Part shown: positions 7,101 to 28,573 of the stretch, piece by piece
Layout: each line of letters opens with the position of its first letter
Position numbering within the stretch: position 1 is the stretch's first letter
Notes under the pieces: model-generated
What the model saw: the letters and a program-made list of their open reading frames with translations, nothing else
Told to the model about the DNA's origin: nothing
Database searches by the model: none
Source of the DNA: Selaginella moellendorffii
Taxonomy: Eukaryota; Plantae; Lycopodiophyta
Assembly (NCBI RefSeq): GCF_000143415.4
Contig: NW_003314284.1
Location: 248,001-312,000 of the forward strand
Direction of reading: 5' to 3'
Length of the DNA: 64,000 nucleotides
Position numbers and translations under genes: made by a program

Positions 7101-10032
7101 TCGAAGTTACATGGGCTCCAATGCTTGCAGCCTTCAGTGTTCCACTGGAGAAGAGTGAAGACGAAGTTATCACTTTTCAGTGTCTCGAGGGATTTCGATA
7201 CGCAATCCGCGTTACTTCTATTATGTCTATGCGGACAGAGCGCGACGCATTCGTGACTTCGCTAGCGAAATTCACATATCTTCATTCGCCCGCTGATATA
7301 AAACAGAAGAACATAGACTCTATTAAGGTATTTTTTCTTTCTCCTCTTTTCATACTCATAATGTAATTCCATGCTGCAGGCGGTGATATCCATTGCTGAT
7401 GAAGATGGAAACTATCTACAGGAAGCCTGGGAACACGTCCTGACGTGTGTTTCTCGCTTTGAGCATCTCCATCTTATTGGTGAAGGCGCTCCTCCTGATG
7501 CCACCTTTTTCGCCGCCCCGCAGTCCGACTCCGACAAAACAATGCAGCTGAAATCGCCTGTCCTTCCTGTGCTTAAGCGGAAATGGCCTGGACGAATGCA
7601 ATATGCTGCTGCTGCCGCAAGAAGAGGATCGTATGAAAGTGCTGGAGTTGGAGGAAATTCGGCTGGGTCTGTTACTGCTGAGCAGATGAACAACTTGGTT
7701 TCGAATCTCAACATGCTGGAGCAGATTGGCAGCTTCGAGATGAACAAGATATTTACCCGCAGCGACCGATTGAACGGCGAGGCAATTGTGGATTTTGTAA
7801 AAGCGCTTTGTAAAGTTTCGATGGAGGAGCTACGATCTCCAACTGATCCTCGGGTATTCAGCCTCACCAAAATTGTTGAAATATCGTAAGTAATCTGTGG
7901 CTTCTTTCTGGTCTCAATTTTCTAAATTACGCTTTTTGCAGGCATTTCAACATGAACCGCATCAGACTCGTTTGGTCGCGAATCTGGAACGTTCTCTCCG
8001 ACTACTTCGTCACGGTTGGGTGTTCTGACAACTTGTCCATTGCAATGTATGCAATGGATTCATTGCGTCAACTGGCAATGAAGTTTCTGGAACGTGAAGA
8101 GCTGGCAAATTACAACTTCCAGAACCAGTTCCTGAAACCTTTTGTTGTGGTTATGCGGAAGAGTAATTCTGTTGAAATTCGGGAGCTGGTGATTCGCTGC
8201 GTGTCGCAAATGGTTTTTGCGCGCGTTAAAAACGTGAAGTCTGGCTGGAAGATTATGTTCATGGTAAGTTTTTCTCATACCTCGCATGCACAAGCTGACT
8301 GTCATTTTCTAGGTGTTTACCACGGCAGCTACAGACGAGCACAAGAGTATGGTGCTTCTGGCTTTTGAGACTATCGAAAAAATTGTCCGGGAGTATTTCT
8401 CGTTCATCACGGAGACAGAGACGACAACGTTCACAGACTGTGTTAACTGTCTCATCGCTTTCACAAATAGCAGATTCAACAACGACATCAGCCTGAATGC
8501 TATTGCATTTTTGAGGTTCTGTGCGCACAAGTTGGCGGAGGGCGAGCTTGGTGCATACGTAAAGAAGGAAGATCGCGTGGCAAATGGTGATATGTCTGAA
8601 CCGACTTTTACTGATCGGGATGATGATTTGCATTTTTGGTTTCCCTTGCTAGCAGGTAAGTTTGTTTTTTCCGTTGATTGTGGAAGGTGTCTCATACTTT
8701 CTGTGTTTCGATCTTCTCTAGGCTTGTCGGAATTGACATTCGATCCTCGGCCTGAAATTCGCAAAAGTGCTTTGGAAGTGCTTTTCGATATATTGCGGTC
8801 GCACGGACATATGTTCTCTCCAGCGCTCTGGGAGCGAGTCTTTGACTCGGTTCTACTTCCTCTCTTTGATTATGTCAGGCGAGCAATCGAGCCCTTACAA
8901 GCAGCGGAAGATGATCACCCAGAGTTTGAAATGGATGCGTGGCTGTACGAGACTTGTACCCTGGCCCTGCAGCTTGTGGTGGACTTGTTCGTAAAGTTCT
9001 ATCCGGTGGTCGCCCATCTGTTAGGGAGAATACTGCTGCTACTTACGGGCTTTCTAAAGAGACCGCACCAGAGTTTGGCTGCAATTGGAGTAGCCGCGTT
9101 CGTGAGGCTGATGAGTCACACAGGGCATTTATTCACGGATGAGAAGTGGGACGAAGTTCTTGCCGCACTGCAAGAGGCCGCCGAAGGCACTCTCCCAGAT
9201 ATGAGCAAAGTTATGGAGTGCCTGGAAGATATCGAGCTTCAGAAAGCTATTCAAGGATATAAAACAGAGAACGATGCCATGGCCGAGGAAATGACTAGAC
9301 TCCAAGCAGCACTCTCGGACTACAAGTGCAGAACTGCTGTCCAGCTTCTCTTAGTTCAGGTACTAAATCAGACTTCCATCATTCTCTTTGCTCATGCCTT
9401 TCTTCGCTTTACAGGCTGTTAACGAATTGTTTACGAACCACGGCAGTCGCCTGGCAGCGTCTCACAGCATGCTTCTCCTGGACACCCTTCACGTTGTGGC
9501 CGCGCATGCACACAACGTTAACAGTGACATCGCACTCCGAACGAAGCTGCAGCAAGTGAAGGTGGCAACGCAGCTGTCTGATCCCCCACTACTGCGTCTG
9601 GAAAGCGAGTCATACCACGCCTACCTCAACCTCTTGCAGACTCTATCGGTCTTGAAGCCCGAGCTTGCAAAGGACGCGGAAGTGGAAGGTCGCCTGGTGG
9701 AACTGTGCGAGGAGGTGTTGCAAGTGTACCTCTGTACCGCAACCGGTGTTGCCGCTGCTTGGGACTCCGGCGACAAGAGTAGTGCTCAGCCTCTCTGGTC
9801 GATTCCGCTCAGCTCGTCTAGGAGGCGTGAGCTGAGTGCCCGTGCTCCTCTCGTGGTTTCCACGCTTCAAGCTGTCGGCGGACTGAAGGAGTCATCGTTT
9901 GAGAAGCACCTGCTCAGATTTTTTCCGCTGCTGGCAACGCTGATAGCTTGTGAGCACGGCTCGGAGGAAGTTCAAGTGGCATTGAGCGACATGTTTAGCT
10001 CCTGGATCGGCCCGATTCTTTTGCAAGCCTGA
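4168..10032 (+). CDS. BIG: Brefeldin A-inhibited ARF guanine-nucleotide exchange factor (BIG family, Sec7 domain)
   Basis: DCB/HUS N-terminus ([33 protein letters not shown]), Sec7 motifs [17 protein letters not shown] and [15 protein letters not shown] region ([24 protein letters not shown]); multiple short GT-AG introns. Confidence 0.97.
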
Positions 10033-10134
10033 TGATATCTTTGGAGGTATATTTTTGTTTATTCTCTCGTAGCTAACCAATTCGTCTTTGCTTTCCCAAG
10101 GCTAGAGCATGATAAAAGCTGGTAACTAGAAGTT

Positions 10135-11040
10135 TTAAACAGTGGAAGACGCATGTTCTACTGAGCATAAGCCAGGTCTGGGACAGCCCCGTGCCATTGG
10201 CATGGACAAGTTTTTGGCAGACCTGAAAGTTCTTGGGATGAACTTGTCCACGTACAAGGTCCCTGCGAGATGGTCGCATTCGTGCTGGAGGATTCGAGCC
10301 TGCCAGCCGGAAGCGTCCACTTTCAATGGCCTGCCTTCGCGGTCCAGTCCGGTGACTTCCACGTCGAGGTGCCTCTCCACCATCGCCCGGAAGCCATGAA
10401 CGCTGGCAGCAAAAGAGCTCGCAGGGAAGAAAGATCAGCGGCAGAAAGTAAAGTTTGGACGAGATCACCTGAGACATCCTTCAAAGAACCTGGCAGTGGC
10501 ACTGGTGGTGGGTCTGAGGATGGGATTGATGATCACCTGGGCAGATATATGAGCTCCCGAAGAAAAGGAAAGGATTGGACTGGAACTTACCAGGAGCTCG
10601 AATGGCTTTCGCTGCTGGGAAAGAGCCTCGTCGCGGGAAACGTAGCTGATATACTCGGCGGTGTCCTCGAGCACAATTATCTGGAAGAGAAGAAGGGAAG
10701 GCATGGCAACCTGGAGCTATCGGCCTACCTGGAGAGGAACTCCGATCTGGGGAGCGGCCAGACCCACGGCCGGTGCCTCCCGCATTGCATCAATCAAGCC
10801 TTGGATGGTGTTCTGGACGGTGTCGCTGCTCACCTCGGAGTGTAGCACCTCTCGCGCGGCCTCATGCAAGACAGGGTCCCCGGCCTGGACGATTTCGAGC
10901 TTGGGCGCCTTGCTCTTGAATCCAAACAGGCTCCGACACTGGAATCTCCTTCTCACCTCGGCTCTCCTCACGCAGTGGTGGACGCGCAGTGGTGGTCTGA
11001 GAGTTGGCAGTGGTGTGGCTGGACTCCAGGCAAGCGCCAT
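10135..11040 (-). CDS. PDF1A: Peptide deformylase, organellar (PDF1A-like)
   Basis: Transit-like N-terminus, [23 protein letters not shown](S) and QHECDHL metal motif across 4 exons. Confidence 0.92.
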
Positions 11041-21183: not shown

Positions 21184-21557
21184 ATGCAGAACGAGGAGGG
21201 CGAGAACGTCGATCTCTACATCCCCAGGAAGTGGTAAGCGCGAATCTCCCGCTTCCTTTGTGGCCGCTCTCATCAGCGCGATTGATTTTCTTGCGCAGCT
21301 CGTCGACCAACAGGCTCATCACTTCCAAGGATCACGCGTCCGTGCAGATCAATGTCGGGCATCTGGATTCCCAGGGAGTTTACATCGGCAAGTACACCAC
21401 ATTCGCCTTCTGCGGCGCTGTCCGATCTCAGGTAAATCTCCGCGACTTTCTCTTCTCTTCGAGAGCTCTGAGTTCTTTTTCGTGCTCTTTCCAGGGAGAT
21501 GTGGACAGTGCGCTGGATCGGCTATGGCAGAAGAAGAAAGCCGAGCTCAAGCAGTAG
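21184..21557 (+). CDS. RPS21: 40S ribosomal protein S21
   Basis: [17 protein letters not shown]|[33 protein letters not shown]|[20 protein letters not shown]; 3 exons. Confidence 0.98.
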
Positions 21558-21775
21558 CGGCGGTGAACCACCAAGAACTCGCTTCTCATGTTTTTTCTCG
21601 TTTCTCCTTGGATGAAATAGTAAAAGATCTTCCTTTCTGGAACACATTGTCTTCGTTCGCCAAAAAGCAATGCCAGAGTTTTTCCTTCGCTTGTAAACTC
21701 CCTGGGAATCCAGATGCCCTTTATTTCTTCGGAAAGTATAAATACTCGAACCCTAAAAACTCTCGTAACTTGGCT

Positions 21776-22782
21776 ATGGCGACTACAAGCAACGACGCAC
21801 TTGCGGCATGGAAGGCTCAGTTGGCGTTTAAAGGAAAGGTGAGAACGTCCCTGATAGGCGATCTTCTGGGGTTAGTGGCGCCGAGCGTCCCAAAACGCGA
21901 ACAAGAGGAGCTGCAATCGCTGCTCGCCGCGAGTGGCATCCACAGAGGAGAACAGCTGCGGAAATTCCATGCCGGCAAGCTTCTCGATATGGGCGTCTCG
22001 GAATGGGTGTGCAAGGTGCTGCTGGAGAAAGAGATCATACGCTCAGGTTGGTGAATCTTTTTGGCCTTCAAAGAATTATCTTGTCGATGGCAGGAATATC
22101 GACTCCCGTGGCGATGAGTGCGCTAGCGGCGTCGCGTGTGGACATCAAGTCGTCCGACCTGGCGATTTTCGACGGGGGATATGCGAGCCAGGAGCTGCTG
22201 GATCGGCTCCACAAGGAATTCCGCAACAAGACGTGGTTGGATCTGGCAAAGGCAGACATGCGAGAGGATGATGCCGAAGCCTTAGATTTCCGAAAGAAGG
22301 AGGTGGAGGCTCTCTATGGCTACCGCGCGGTCCTCAGGACAATTGTCAGGGAGGCGACGGTTCCATACGCTCTTCGCGACGACGAATGCTACGTCGGGAG
22401 CTTCTACTTCATGAAACTCGCCAAAACATCTCATGATTCGAAAGAGAGGGAATGGTCGCGGGTGGTGTGGATGCTGCAAGTGCAGAGCGATGAGATGGAG
22501 TTCGCGGAGGCGCTGGGGAGATTGATCCAGGGCATGCAGAAGATCCAGCAGCACCAGGCCTCGAGAGATCTGGCGTACGGAGTCGTTTGTGGCACGAAGT
22601 TCGTGAATGTTTACGAGTTCCATCTCCAGCTTGGCAGCGATGCTGGAGTTCTTCCCCAGGCAGTAGAGAAGTACGAATTTACTTTGTATCAGCCCTTGGC
22701 GGGGTTTGAAGCGATCGTCACCCTCATGTGTGCTAGCGAAAAGGCTCACGGTTTTGTAGGTGATGAATTGGAAGAACCCTAG
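21776..22782 (+). CDS. Uncharacterised 2-exon protein: SAM-like N-terminal module + degenerate REase-fold-like C-terminal module
   Basis: TATAAATA at 21737; ATG 21776; intron 22047-22093 joins the two open frames (..IIRSG|ISTPVA..); intact to TAG at 22782. The gene model is well supported; the domain calls are by-eye inference. Confidence 0.7.
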
Positions 22783-23276: not shown

Positions 23277-25872
23277 ATGGTCGTCTGCTCCATGGCGCTC
23301 TACTCCAGCTCCCCTCCGGCCCCTGTTTCTTGCGGCAGCCATTGCTCCACTCACCACAGCAGCGGCGTCTCTAGCGACTCGGAGGCCCATCTTTGCTGGC
23401 TCCAGGGCGGGCAGAGCTCGGGGCCACGGCAGTCAAGGGCCGGCGGGCTCTCCTACCTCTTCGCCAGTCCCAATGCGCGGCAGCACTCGTCTTGCGCGAT
23501 CAGTGACGCGCTGGAGTCGGGCAGCTTGTCATCGTCGGTGAGGAGCGTCTCTCAAGTGGATCATCCCAAATGGGAGGATGGTCGCAGCGGTAGCATTAAC
23601 ATTCCCGGATCTTCGTTTGGCAAGCGCAGCTCGGTCTCGATCATCCAGAGCCCATACACTTACAGTAGCTGCATCTTCTCGGTGGCCGGGCGCGAAGCTC
23701 CGGTTTGCGCTGATCTTCCTCCGCTGGATCCACACGTTGGTTCGTGGGGTAGAGGTATTGCCACTGTTGACACGCGGACACCGGTTTATAGGAGAGAAGG
23801 ATTCGAAGTTAGTCAAGAGGAGAGCAAGAGCTTGACAGCAGCGCTCACGGATTTCCTTGTACATAATGGCGGTAATTCTTTCGTGGGCTTTGACTTTAGT
23901 GACGTGCCGGATTCCAGAACGGCGAAACAGGCGTCACCAAACGAGATCTTGGTGGACGCCCAGCGGCGGCACAAGGTTTTCAAGGATCCGTTCATAATCA
24001 AAGCGTTTAGATTGGCCGAAGAAGCTCATCGCGGTCATGTAAGTTTTTCTCTTTTCTTGTTTCCTTCTTCTTATCTTCTTACGTGTTCTTGCTTGCTTTC
24101 TTGCAGTTTAGGCGGAGCGGAGAACTTTACCTGACTCACTGCGTAGAGACTGCTATACTTTTGGCGTCGGCTGGTGCGGAAGCCACCGTAGTTGCCGCTG
24201 GTTTACTACATGACACGCTAGATGATTCAAGCATTGACGAGGCGCAAATTCGTGCCATTTTTGGAGACGATGTCGCTGACCTTGTTGTAGGGGTAAGATG
24301 TAGTTTTGATACTGTTTTTGAACGATGGTACTAACTTTGGTTCTAAACAGGTATCGAAGATAAGTCAGCTAAGCCAGCTTGCTAGGGACAACAACATCGC
24401 TAGCAAGACGCTAGAAGCAGATCGTCTCAGGACAATGTTTCTAGCGATGGTCGACGTGCGTGTGGTGTTGATCAAGCTTGCTGATAGGCTGCACAACATG
24501 CGAACTTTGGAAGCTTTGGCAGCGGAGAAGCAGAACCGGATCGCCAGTGAAACTCTTGAAATCCTCGTACCCATAGCAAACAGGCTGGGAATATGGAGCT
24601 GGAAAGCAGAGATGGAGGACCTGTGTTTCAAGTACTTAAATCCTACCGAGTATCAGGAACTTGCTGCCAAACTGATAGAATGCTGCCGCGGAGGCGTGGT
24701 ACTGTCGGCGATTGAGCAGCTTGACAAGGCGCTACGTAAAAGTAAGATCAAAATCGAAGATCTTTGTGGCCGGTCTAAAACTCTTTTCAGCATTTACACT
24801 AAGATGAAGAAGTAAGTTGACAAAAAGTTCGCTCTTTATGATTTCGTCTCATCATTGGTCATTTGCAGGAAAGGGCGCAGTATCGATGAAATATACGATG
24901 TCCGAGGTCTTCGTTTGATTGTCAAAGATGAAGCTGATTGCTACAAAGCCTTGGAGTTTGTGCACAAGCTCTGGGATCACATTCCAGGAAAACTAAAGGA
25001 TTACATCAAACAGCCAAAGGCTAACGGGTAAGTGGCTGGCTTTCATGTTTTGGAGCTTTGAACTGAGTCCGCCTTTCGCAGGTATCAGTCATTGCACACA
25101 GTTGTAAGCGGCAAGGATGGTCTTCCTTTGGAAGTTCAGATAAGAACGAAAGAAATGCACAGTCATGCCGAATTCGGGATGGCTGCGCACTGGCGATACA
25201 AGGAAGGAAACGATACAAAGCACTCCGCTTTCCTTTTGCAACGAGTGGAATGGGCAAGATGGATCCTCACCTGGCACAGCGAAATCATGGACAACAAGCT
25301 ACGAGTTTCACCATCACACATGGACTTGAAGTCATCCTGCCCGTTTCCTTTCCACAAGGACGATTGTCGGCACGCTCACCCCTTTTCTGGACCGCCGGAA
25401 AGCGAGGACGATCCACTGTTCGTGATCATGCTCAAAGACGAAACGGTAACTAGCTTTTTGTTTGTTGAAGTTTCCAAGTTGGGCTGACTTTGCTTGTGTT
25501 TCTCCATAGATGATTGTTCAAGAGCTTCCTCCGGGTTGCACTGCTGCCGACCTCGTCACGGAAAGAGGCGCGGATCACTTTCTTCTCGATCCAGGCGTGC
25601 TCTCGGAGATGACACCCCGAGTAAACCATCAGGAGGTGGAGAACTTTCACCAGAAGCTCCGGATGGGAGACGTGGTGGAGATCGTGGACAAGGAGGAGAG
25701 GTCCAAGGTGTTGGTCACCATGGCTCGAGTTCCAGCCAAAGCTTCCAACGAGATAAGCGTTTACAGAGAGCAGATCCGCCGCATGTACGCTGCTGACAGG
25801 AGCTGCAAAGTCGATGCACGGAAGATCTTCGAGCTCGCCAAAGAGAACACACAAGTTGCGGGGCTGACTTAG
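23277..25872 (+). CDS. RSH: RelA/SpoT homologue (RSH2/RSH3 type ppGpp synthetase/hydrolase)
   Basis: [11 protein letters not shown] transit start; [23 protein letters not shown] (HD), [48 protein letters not shown]. Confidence 0.96.
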
Positions 25873-26111
25873 ATAAACCAAAGAGAGAAAAAAGAAAGGA
25901 AAAGAAGGAAGACTTCCTCACAGGTACATTGTTTCATTCGATTTGTACATTTCACTGTGTATATAACAGGAATCTTGACTTTGTACCACCGAAAAGAAGT
26001 TTCTGGTGTTCACTCTAAAAACTTTAAGGTGGCTTTCAATTCAATCGTTGGTGGGGATTCCTCCAGGATGTGATCTTCACCCTCGTCATCGCTGGATTTG
26101 GCTCAAATAGT

Positions 26112-26502
26112 ATGGTTTCAGTGCGAAGATTTTCATTTGCGAGGAGCTCGAATCGGAGGATGATCAAGGTTTTAAGTTTGCTTCTTGTGATACTCGCGTG
26201 TTGTGAAGGAGCAAGGCTCCAAGGTACTTTACTGTGTGTGTGTGTTTTCATCCAAGTGGTTGTAGCTAACAAGGCTATGGTTTTGCCCAAAAAAAAGCAA
26301 GTAGTTTGGCACTGGCACACTGGAGGAAGGTGAGTGATGAGATTATAATTATCATCACTGATAATTTGATTGCTGGAACCTTTGGTTGTGAGATTTTTGA
26401 TAGACCGACTATGAGGATGTGGATCCTATTCCACAGCGGAGGTATCGTCCCAGGCCAGGCCCTACTCCAAGATCCATCCCCAAAGTTTCTAAAGGGAACT
26501 AG
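26112..26502 (+). CDS. Putative small secreted peptide precursor with DY motif (3 exons; 64-80 aa)
   Basis: Exons 26112(or 26160)-26223, 26298-26329, 26404-26502; two 74-bp GT-AG introns keep the frame; product ..MIKVLSLLLVILACCEGARLQASSLALAHWRKTDYEDVDPIPQRRYRPRPGPTPRSIPKVSKGN*. Confidence 0.65.
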
Positions 26503-26821
26503 AGAAGAAAACATATCATACATATCATATCTTTGTTAATATATAATAACAAAGAGTAAGATAAATAAGAAATAACAAAGATAACAATAATAGTTTGTAT
26601 AAACCCTAAACCCGTATCCTCTGTTTTTATCTAGGGTTTTTCTTTGACGAGTTTCACACGCGCTCGAAGGTAATAGAATTCTTTACTCGCTAATTAATCC
26701 GATTCTAGGCACGATGCTTTCGATTCTCAAGAGAGGCCTCGTGCATTCTTCGTTTTACCTCAAACGGGAAGTTTTGGACCAGGGCTGCGATTCCAGGGTT
26801 GGGCGCTGGAGCTCCAGATTC

Positions 26822-28573
<1,752 letters not shown>

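Follow-up and report, generated by a model that had tools for sequence, protein, structure and literature searches.

Between RSH and GSNOR in Selaginella moellendorffii: An Unannotated Candidate Gene for a Probably Sulfated, Secreted DY Peptide

Results

In Selaginella moellendorffii, the gap between an RSH gene and a gene for a class III ADH of the GSNOR type holds a candidate three-exon gene for a small DY-motif precursor, located at positions 26112-26502 on the plus strand. All coordinates refer to the window, that is, the whole stretch of 64,000 nucleotides that was analysed (contig NW_003314284.1, positions 248,001 to 312,000). The public annotation of the corresponding sequence GL377623.1 describes the upstream neighbour as a protein of 762 aa with HD_4 and RelA_SpoT domains, and lets the RSH gene end at the equivalent of window position 25872. 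The identity of the downstream neighbour follows from the matches of an ADH exon to 4dl9 and 3uko (E ~1e-52), and its annotated start is the equivalent of window position 26714. There are no gene models at all in the public annotation of GL377623.1 between these two genes. The sequence-only reading from which the candidate originates had given the size of the gap as 950 bp, which is right if one counts to the MASATAG start of GSNOR, but the distance to the publicly annotated ATG at 26714 is only 841 bp.

Two observations concern the GSNOR gene itself. Its public model has 416 aa and begins at an ATG that lies 109 nt 5' of the conventional MASATAG start (window 26714-26822; 15036 onward at the GL377623.1 locus). 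This upstream ATG yields a basic N-terminal extension of ~36 residues, a possible targeting peptide, unless the start has been annotated too far upstream. In addition, a telo-box, AAACCCTAA, is located at 26601-26609 and an inverted copy of it, CTAGGGTTT, at 26631-26639, 75-113 bp 5' of the annotated GSNOR start codon. Telo-boxes are typical elements of plant promoters or 5'-leaders, and the present pair probably marks the start of the GSNOR promoter, limiting the room for the 3' end of the candidate gene.

At the other end of the gap, a candidate TATA box (TATATAA, 25960-25966, plus strand) can be read 146 nt 5' of the first methionine of the candidate, Met1, but this element may equally well belong to the 3' UTR or poly(A) region of RSH. 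A minimal uORF, ATG-TGA, is found at 26068-26073, 44 nt 5' of Met1. It would be part of the 5' leader if transcription begins near the TATATAA at 25960.

We now consider the gene model. Re-reading and re-translating the DNA gave exactly the exons, the two 74-nt GT-AG introns and the translation that had been proposed in the sequence-only reading, all of them on the plus strand. Exon 1 (26112-26223), which ends in phase 1, contains two possible starts, Met1 (26112) and Met17 (26160); it encodes a basic stretch followed by a hydrophobic core and then by a c-region of small residues. Intron 1 (26224-26297; 74 nt, GTACTT...AAG) has the borders AAG/GTACTT and AAAAG/CA and contains a (TG)n run and, at 26266-26270, a CTAAC branch motif. 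The acceptor follows 28 nt later and is the earliest AG far enough from this branch point to be usable. An acceptor AG at 26264-26265 was also considered and rejected, because the intron would then be 42 nt, which is too short. Exon 2 (26298-26329) is only 32 nt long and contributes propeptide sequence ending in His-Trp-Arg-Lys. Intron 2 (26330-26403; 74 nt, GTGAGT...TAG) has the borders AAG/GTGAGT and GATAG/AC. Exon 3 (26404-26502) consists of 32 codons and a TAG stop, with the DY codons at 26407-26412. It is followed by a candidate 3' UTR (26503-26600, plus strand), an AT-rich segment (G+C 0.23) with AATAAA-like and TGTA motifs that would end at the GSNOR telo-boxes.

The base composition agrees with the model. 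The G+C content is 0.44-0.53 in the exons, 0.39 and 0.32 in introns 1 and 2, and 0.23 in the 118 nt past the stop, and this alternation at the proposed boundaries fits what is expected of exons and introns. The length of the introns is ordinary for the region, since the introns of the neighbouring GSNOR gene, read by eye, are 84 and 89 nt long. Not all of the splice signals are strong. The donor GTACTT of intron 1 and its acceptor, in which a run of A precedes the AG, are just moderate, and a competing acceptor AG is present in intron 2 at 26391-26392, 11 nt 5' of the chosen one; its use shifts the frame, and the DY is lost. The codon-usage log-odds are higher for the claimed frame than for the shifted frames, yet they are not separable from the background.

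Another option considered was a two-exon model in which exon 1 is read through to a donor at 26301 and joined to the acceptor at 26403. It also reaches the DY exon, and it adds a second hydrophobic stretch to the product. This model was rejected, as it is broken in GL377623.1 by a 2-bp difference between the haplotypes.

GL377623.1 (GCA_000143415.2) aligns to window positions 11652-32234 with 97.6% identity and many small indels, and on the basis of this alignment we take the two sequences to be different haplotypes, or different assemblies, of the same S. moellendorffii region. The 841-bp gap contains 8 positions at which they differ, plus one 2-bp indel. In GL377623.1 each of the three exons can be translated in frame without interruption, and the DY peptide is identical. 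The only difference in exon 1 is R15W, 5' of Met17, which may hint that Met17 is the true start or that the extension is tolerant of change. Exon 2 is the same in both haplotypes, and the TAG stop is changed to TAA in the other haplotype and thus remains a stop. The sole indel is a length difference in the (TG)n microsatellite at 26232-26246 in intron 1. It therefore shifts the frame of models that read through this intron, while the three-exon model is spared. The haplotypes diverge by 0.5% over the span of the gene and by 1.3-1.4% over the remainder of the gap, which corresponds to two events where ~5 are expected; this is compatible with constraint, but the counts are too small for significance.

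The alignment also draws attention to a locus further upstream (window 21260-22782; 10001-10575 at the GL377623.1 locus). There, the annotated LOC112351209, an 'uncharacterized protein' of 175 aa, covers just 22% of the 259-aa ORF in the window. This stretch is the most divergent one between the haplotypes, with 4.35% mismatches and 19 gap columns compared to ~1% elsewhere, and the haplotypes may differ in the gene model or in the gene itself.

The predicted precursor of the candidate gene has 76 aa when counted from Met1 and 60 aa from Met17. The hydrophobic core encoded by exon 1 consists of 12 uncharged residues (VLSLLLVILACC) and is preceded by basic residues. The signal cleavage proposed in the sequence-only reading, CEGA/R, violates the -3/-1 rule by placing a Glu at -3; a cut following Gly34 or Cys32 would agree better with this rule. 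Exon 3 encodes a Thr and then a 31-residue, Pro/Arg-rich DY peptide that ends in Gly-Asn at the C-terminus of the precursor. The DY sits in the context K-T-D-Y-E-D-V-D. Such a strongly acidic D-Y-E-D-x-D environment of the tyrosine would suit TPST and resembles that of TPST substrates. Past this acidic head the peptide is strongly basic, with 6 Arg and 2 Lys in the 31 residues. Published working criteria for precursors of this type ask for fewer than 200 aa, for a secretion signal at the N-terminus and for a peptide located at the C-terminal end (PMC8462819). The candidate has all these generic features of TPST-dependent precursors, being 60-76 aa long, with a predicted hydrophobic secretion signal and with the DY 31 residues from the end.

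The DY peptide was compared by hand with the mature Arabidopsis peptides tabulated in PMC11534595. A DY sulfation motif forms the N-terminus of mature CIF/TWS1-type peptides (PMC9169856), and this feature is present in the candidate (26407-26412). These peptides also carry an [S/N/D]-P-x-P core, at positions 6-9 in CIF1-4 and 7-10 in TWS1 (PMC11534595). The candidate has D6-P7-I8-P9, that is, the DY-x3-[S/N/D]-P-x-P pattern in exact register with CIF1-4, with the reservation that this short, Pro-rich motif, matched by hand, can occur by chance. The similarity to CIF4 amounts to 9 shared residues in 23 and includes P-x-P-G-P-x-P, followed by His in CIF4 and by Arg in the candidate. Its P-x-x-I-P-K segment (P-R-S-I-P-K) furthermore resembles the P-x-x-x-I-P-N tail of CIF1/2. 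Mature CIF peptides end in Asn or His, and the candidate precursor ends in Asn. On the other hand, the candidate differs from the CIFs in that it has no Gly at position 3 and has Lys instead of Asn after I-P, and in that it counts 31 residues from DY to the end compared to 21-23. The C-terminal rule of the CIF/TWS1 peptides, 21-23 residues with a His or Asn at the end, does not hold for it: it has Arg22 where CIF4 and TWS1 have His23, and a terminal Asn occurs only at residue 31, where the precursor itself ends.

The resemblance to TWS1 (TWISTED SEED1, At5g01075), a ligand of GSO1/GSO2, extends to the architecture of the precursor, which is likewise small: its 81 aa include a signal peptide, and the only DY is found near the C-terminal third. 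An alignment with one 1-residue gap gives 9 identities in 23 positions, and in both peptides a V-D-P-x-P follows right after the DY head and a P-G-P comes 7 residues further on. Residues continue past the aligned core in both cases; in TWS1, this C-terminal extension is removed by ALE1/SBT1.8, and the N-terminal cleavage is guided by the sulfotyrosine at P2' (PMC9169856). The two differ at the mature end, where the His23 of TWS1 is replaced by Arg in the candidate, and in the N-terminal processing context, which is K-T/DY in the candidate and E/DY in TWS1. No statistically supported homology between them was found in the HMMER search of 1.84 billion representatives or in the phmmer search of the PDB.

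Among the PSY peptides, PSY5 (At5g53486) fits just as well as the CIFs and TWS1 do. It is identical to the candidate at 9 of 21 positions in an ungapped alignment (DY, D4, P7, P9 and R-x-R-P-G), and the two are alike in their acidic head, their basic Pro/Gly tail and the size of the precursor. However, the candidate lacks the Asn8, His11 and Pro13 of the PSYs and has Ile8, Arg11 and Tyr13 in their place. These three residues recur in the nine Arabidopsis PSYs, with His11 in 9/9 (PMC11534595). The RGF/GLV/CLEL peptides share with the candidate the DY at the N-terminus, a Pro-rich basic body and a C-terminal Asn. They have only 13-16 residues, and their (K/R)PP-type motif is followed by a terminal His-Asn or Asn-Asn, whereas the candidate has 31 residues and a Lys-Gly-Asn end. 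The YIYTQ pentapeptide of PSK is absent from all three exon translations.

The sequence-only reading had suggested that the peptide may form a distinct family. The defining residues of CIF/TWS1, PSY, RGF and PSK are indeed missing, but that reading had overlooked the in-register CIF-type DY-x3-[S/N/D]-P-x-P core and the VDPxP and PGP spacing of TWS1. Moreover, it takes more than one isolated sequence to define a family, and the new-family reading is thus unsupported. Judging from the alignments, the peptide appears to be of the general kind of secreted DY precursors, with CIF/TWS1 and PSY5 as the closest, while neither membership in one of these families nor a new family is established.

A number of database searches were performed, in which the exons were used separately and not as a joined protein. 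A word search of 5.8 billion clusters with the unspliced ORF that contains exon 1 gave no called protein of 40-128 aa, transcript-derived ones included, that shares exon 1, which suggests that no assembled spliced transcript has ever been called. With exon 3 as the HMMER query, nothing was found at E<=0.001 among 1.84 billion representative proteins, a result that for a query of 32 residues excludes only near-identical proteins. Pfam was blank for the exon translations and for every ORF of at least 77 aa in the gap on both strands, phmmer against the PDB (E<=10) gave no hit, and Rfam returned nothing beyond a sub-threshold chance match to a CRISPR repeat. Self-BLAST and tblastn revealed no repeats or paralogues within the window. 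There was also no match for a degenerate DNA pattern of the DY core in the JGI metagenome contigs, for the peptide's own motifs in a full-text literature search, or for the last RSH exon in a word search for syntenic contigs of other species. One lead from the ESM Atlas, an 84-aa Streptophyta 'transmembrane protein' cluster, was discarded, its score of 0.76 being under any useful threshold. Two of the findings that the sequence-only reading had named as refuting it were thus looked for, and these searches turned up neither a protein derived from a spliced transcript nor a homologue in which the DY is conserved. We regard the absence of transcripts in the accessible data as mild negative evidence.

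It is necessary to ask how often an arrangement of this kind arises by chance. We enumerated, on both strands, all products of 50-130 aa that begin with an ATG and a signal-peptide-like start, use at most two GT-AG introns of 45-150 nt, and contain a DY with a basic residue no more than 3 positions ahead of it, a distance of 12-45 residues to the end, and at least 5 Pro among the 25 residues that follow. In the real window, the candidate is the sole qualifying locus on either strand, and in the reversed window there are none. Block-wise dinucleotide shuffles, which do not reproduce all structure of real DNA, gave 5 loci in 122 windows under these loose criteria, and 4 loci in 1026 windows (~0.4%) when the DY and its tail had to lie in one terminal exon, as they do at the real locus. 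No chance locus has all of the following at once: a clean h-region, short introns, a C-terminal Asn, 7 Pro among 25 residues, and 4 acidic residues no more than 5 positions away from the Tyr. DY/Pro-rich terminal ORFs alone occur ~0.2 times per shuffled window, and the rare part is thus the joinable upstream signal-peptide ORF (~2%).

Discussion

The ORF and splice anatomy of the candidate, its rarity per window and its intactness in both haplotypes are established. In the explanation that we favour, the locus is a genuine gene missing from the annotation, and its product is a secreted and probably sulfated DY peptide, nearest to CIF/TWS1 but divergent from it; we assign this reading a probability of about 0.5. 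The candidate needs confirmation at the RNA level before it can be counted as a gene.

A quite possible, if somewhat doubtful, alternative is that the gap is composed of nothing but the RSH 3' UTR and the GSNOR promoter or 5' region, and that its ORFs can be joined on paper without there being any such mRNA or peptide. The locus is unannotated, and the databases searched hold no called protein, transcript-derived protein or homologue that corresponds to it. That the ORFs can be joined is a weak constraint, as 38 distinct GT-AG combinations connect the signal-peptide ORF to the DY ORF. Full models occur 0.004-0.04 times per shuffled window, and over the ~3,700 windows scanned in this genome, ~15 chance loci of the observed architecture are expected, or ~150 under the looser definition, so that a chance assembly is plausible despite the rarity per window. 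The codon-usage score does not discriminate, and the haplotypes are too similar to reveal selection. Against a chance assembly speaks the ~0.4% frequency of the architecture in a single window, where no chance model equals the candidate in quality, with its two introns of 74 nt, its strong 12-residue h-region, its acidic sulfation context, its terminal Asn and its 7 Pro among 25 residues. The G+C content, moreover, alternates exactly at the proposed boundaries, the only indel between the haplotypes is intronic, the stop survives a mutation, and the CIF/TWS1 motif matches in register.

It is unlikely, in our judgement, that the transcript is real but has another product or role, such as an alternative splice form, a basic Pro-rich peptide that is not a ligand (antimicrobial or wall-associated), or a uORF in a long GSNOR leader. 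Alternative in-frame assemblies do exist, and the AG located 11 nt 5' of acceptor 2 competes with it. The peptide is highly basic after its acidic head, is longer than any known CIF, PSY or RGF peptide in the table of PMC11534595, and has no C-terminal His or Asn where CIF4 and TWS1 end. However, the two-exon assembly is disrupted by the 2-bp indel in GL377623.1 and brings in a second hydrophobic stretch, the telo-boxes at 26601-26639 suggest that the GSNOR promoter lies 3' of the candidate ORF, and the D-Y-E-D-x-D context is typical of TPST substrates.

Under the preferred reading of a secreted DY peptide, we infer its transcription, secretion, sulfation, processing and receptor as follows. 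The hydrophobic N-terminus would direct the precursor to the ER and would be removed around residues 32-35. TPST in the Golgi would then sulfate the Tyr of D-Y-E-D-V-D, and some of the prolines would be hydroxylated. A subtilase could cut the Thr/Asp bond right after Arg-Lys, in parallel to the guidance by the P2' sulfotyrosine in TWS1. The released peptide would have 22-31 residues, be rich in Pro and Arg, start with DY, and act as a ligand in the apoplast, perceived by an LRR receptor kinase. Going by the register of the motifs, the nearest model would be a CIF/TWS1-type ligand of a GSO-clade receptor, with either a TWS1-like C-terminal extension or an unusual C-terminus. S. moellendorffii has TPST as well as LRR-RLK XI receptors of all seven clades, including GSO/PEPR (PMC8462819).

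A more far-reaching proposal would be that the peptide is the founding example of a fifth class of tyrosine-sulfated hormones, specific to lycophytes, defined by a DY peptide of ~31 residues whose head is acidic, whose body is rich in Arg and Pro and whose end is Gly-Asn, and perceived by an LRR receptor kinase of its own that is not an orthologue of GSO, PSYR, RGI or PSKR. We consider this to be very improbable.

Conclusions

Small genes of the kind described here escape annotation, and peptide ligands are therefore poorly catalogued in seedless vascular plants. Lycophyte roots form endodermal barriers. They arose independently of euphyllophyte roots (PMC8462819). If the candidate between RSH and GSNOR is a true CIF/TWS1-like ligand in Selaginella, it would provide a natural variant with an unusual C-terminus for studies of receptor specificity, and it would make it possible to test whether barrier surveillance of the GSO type predates the seed plants.
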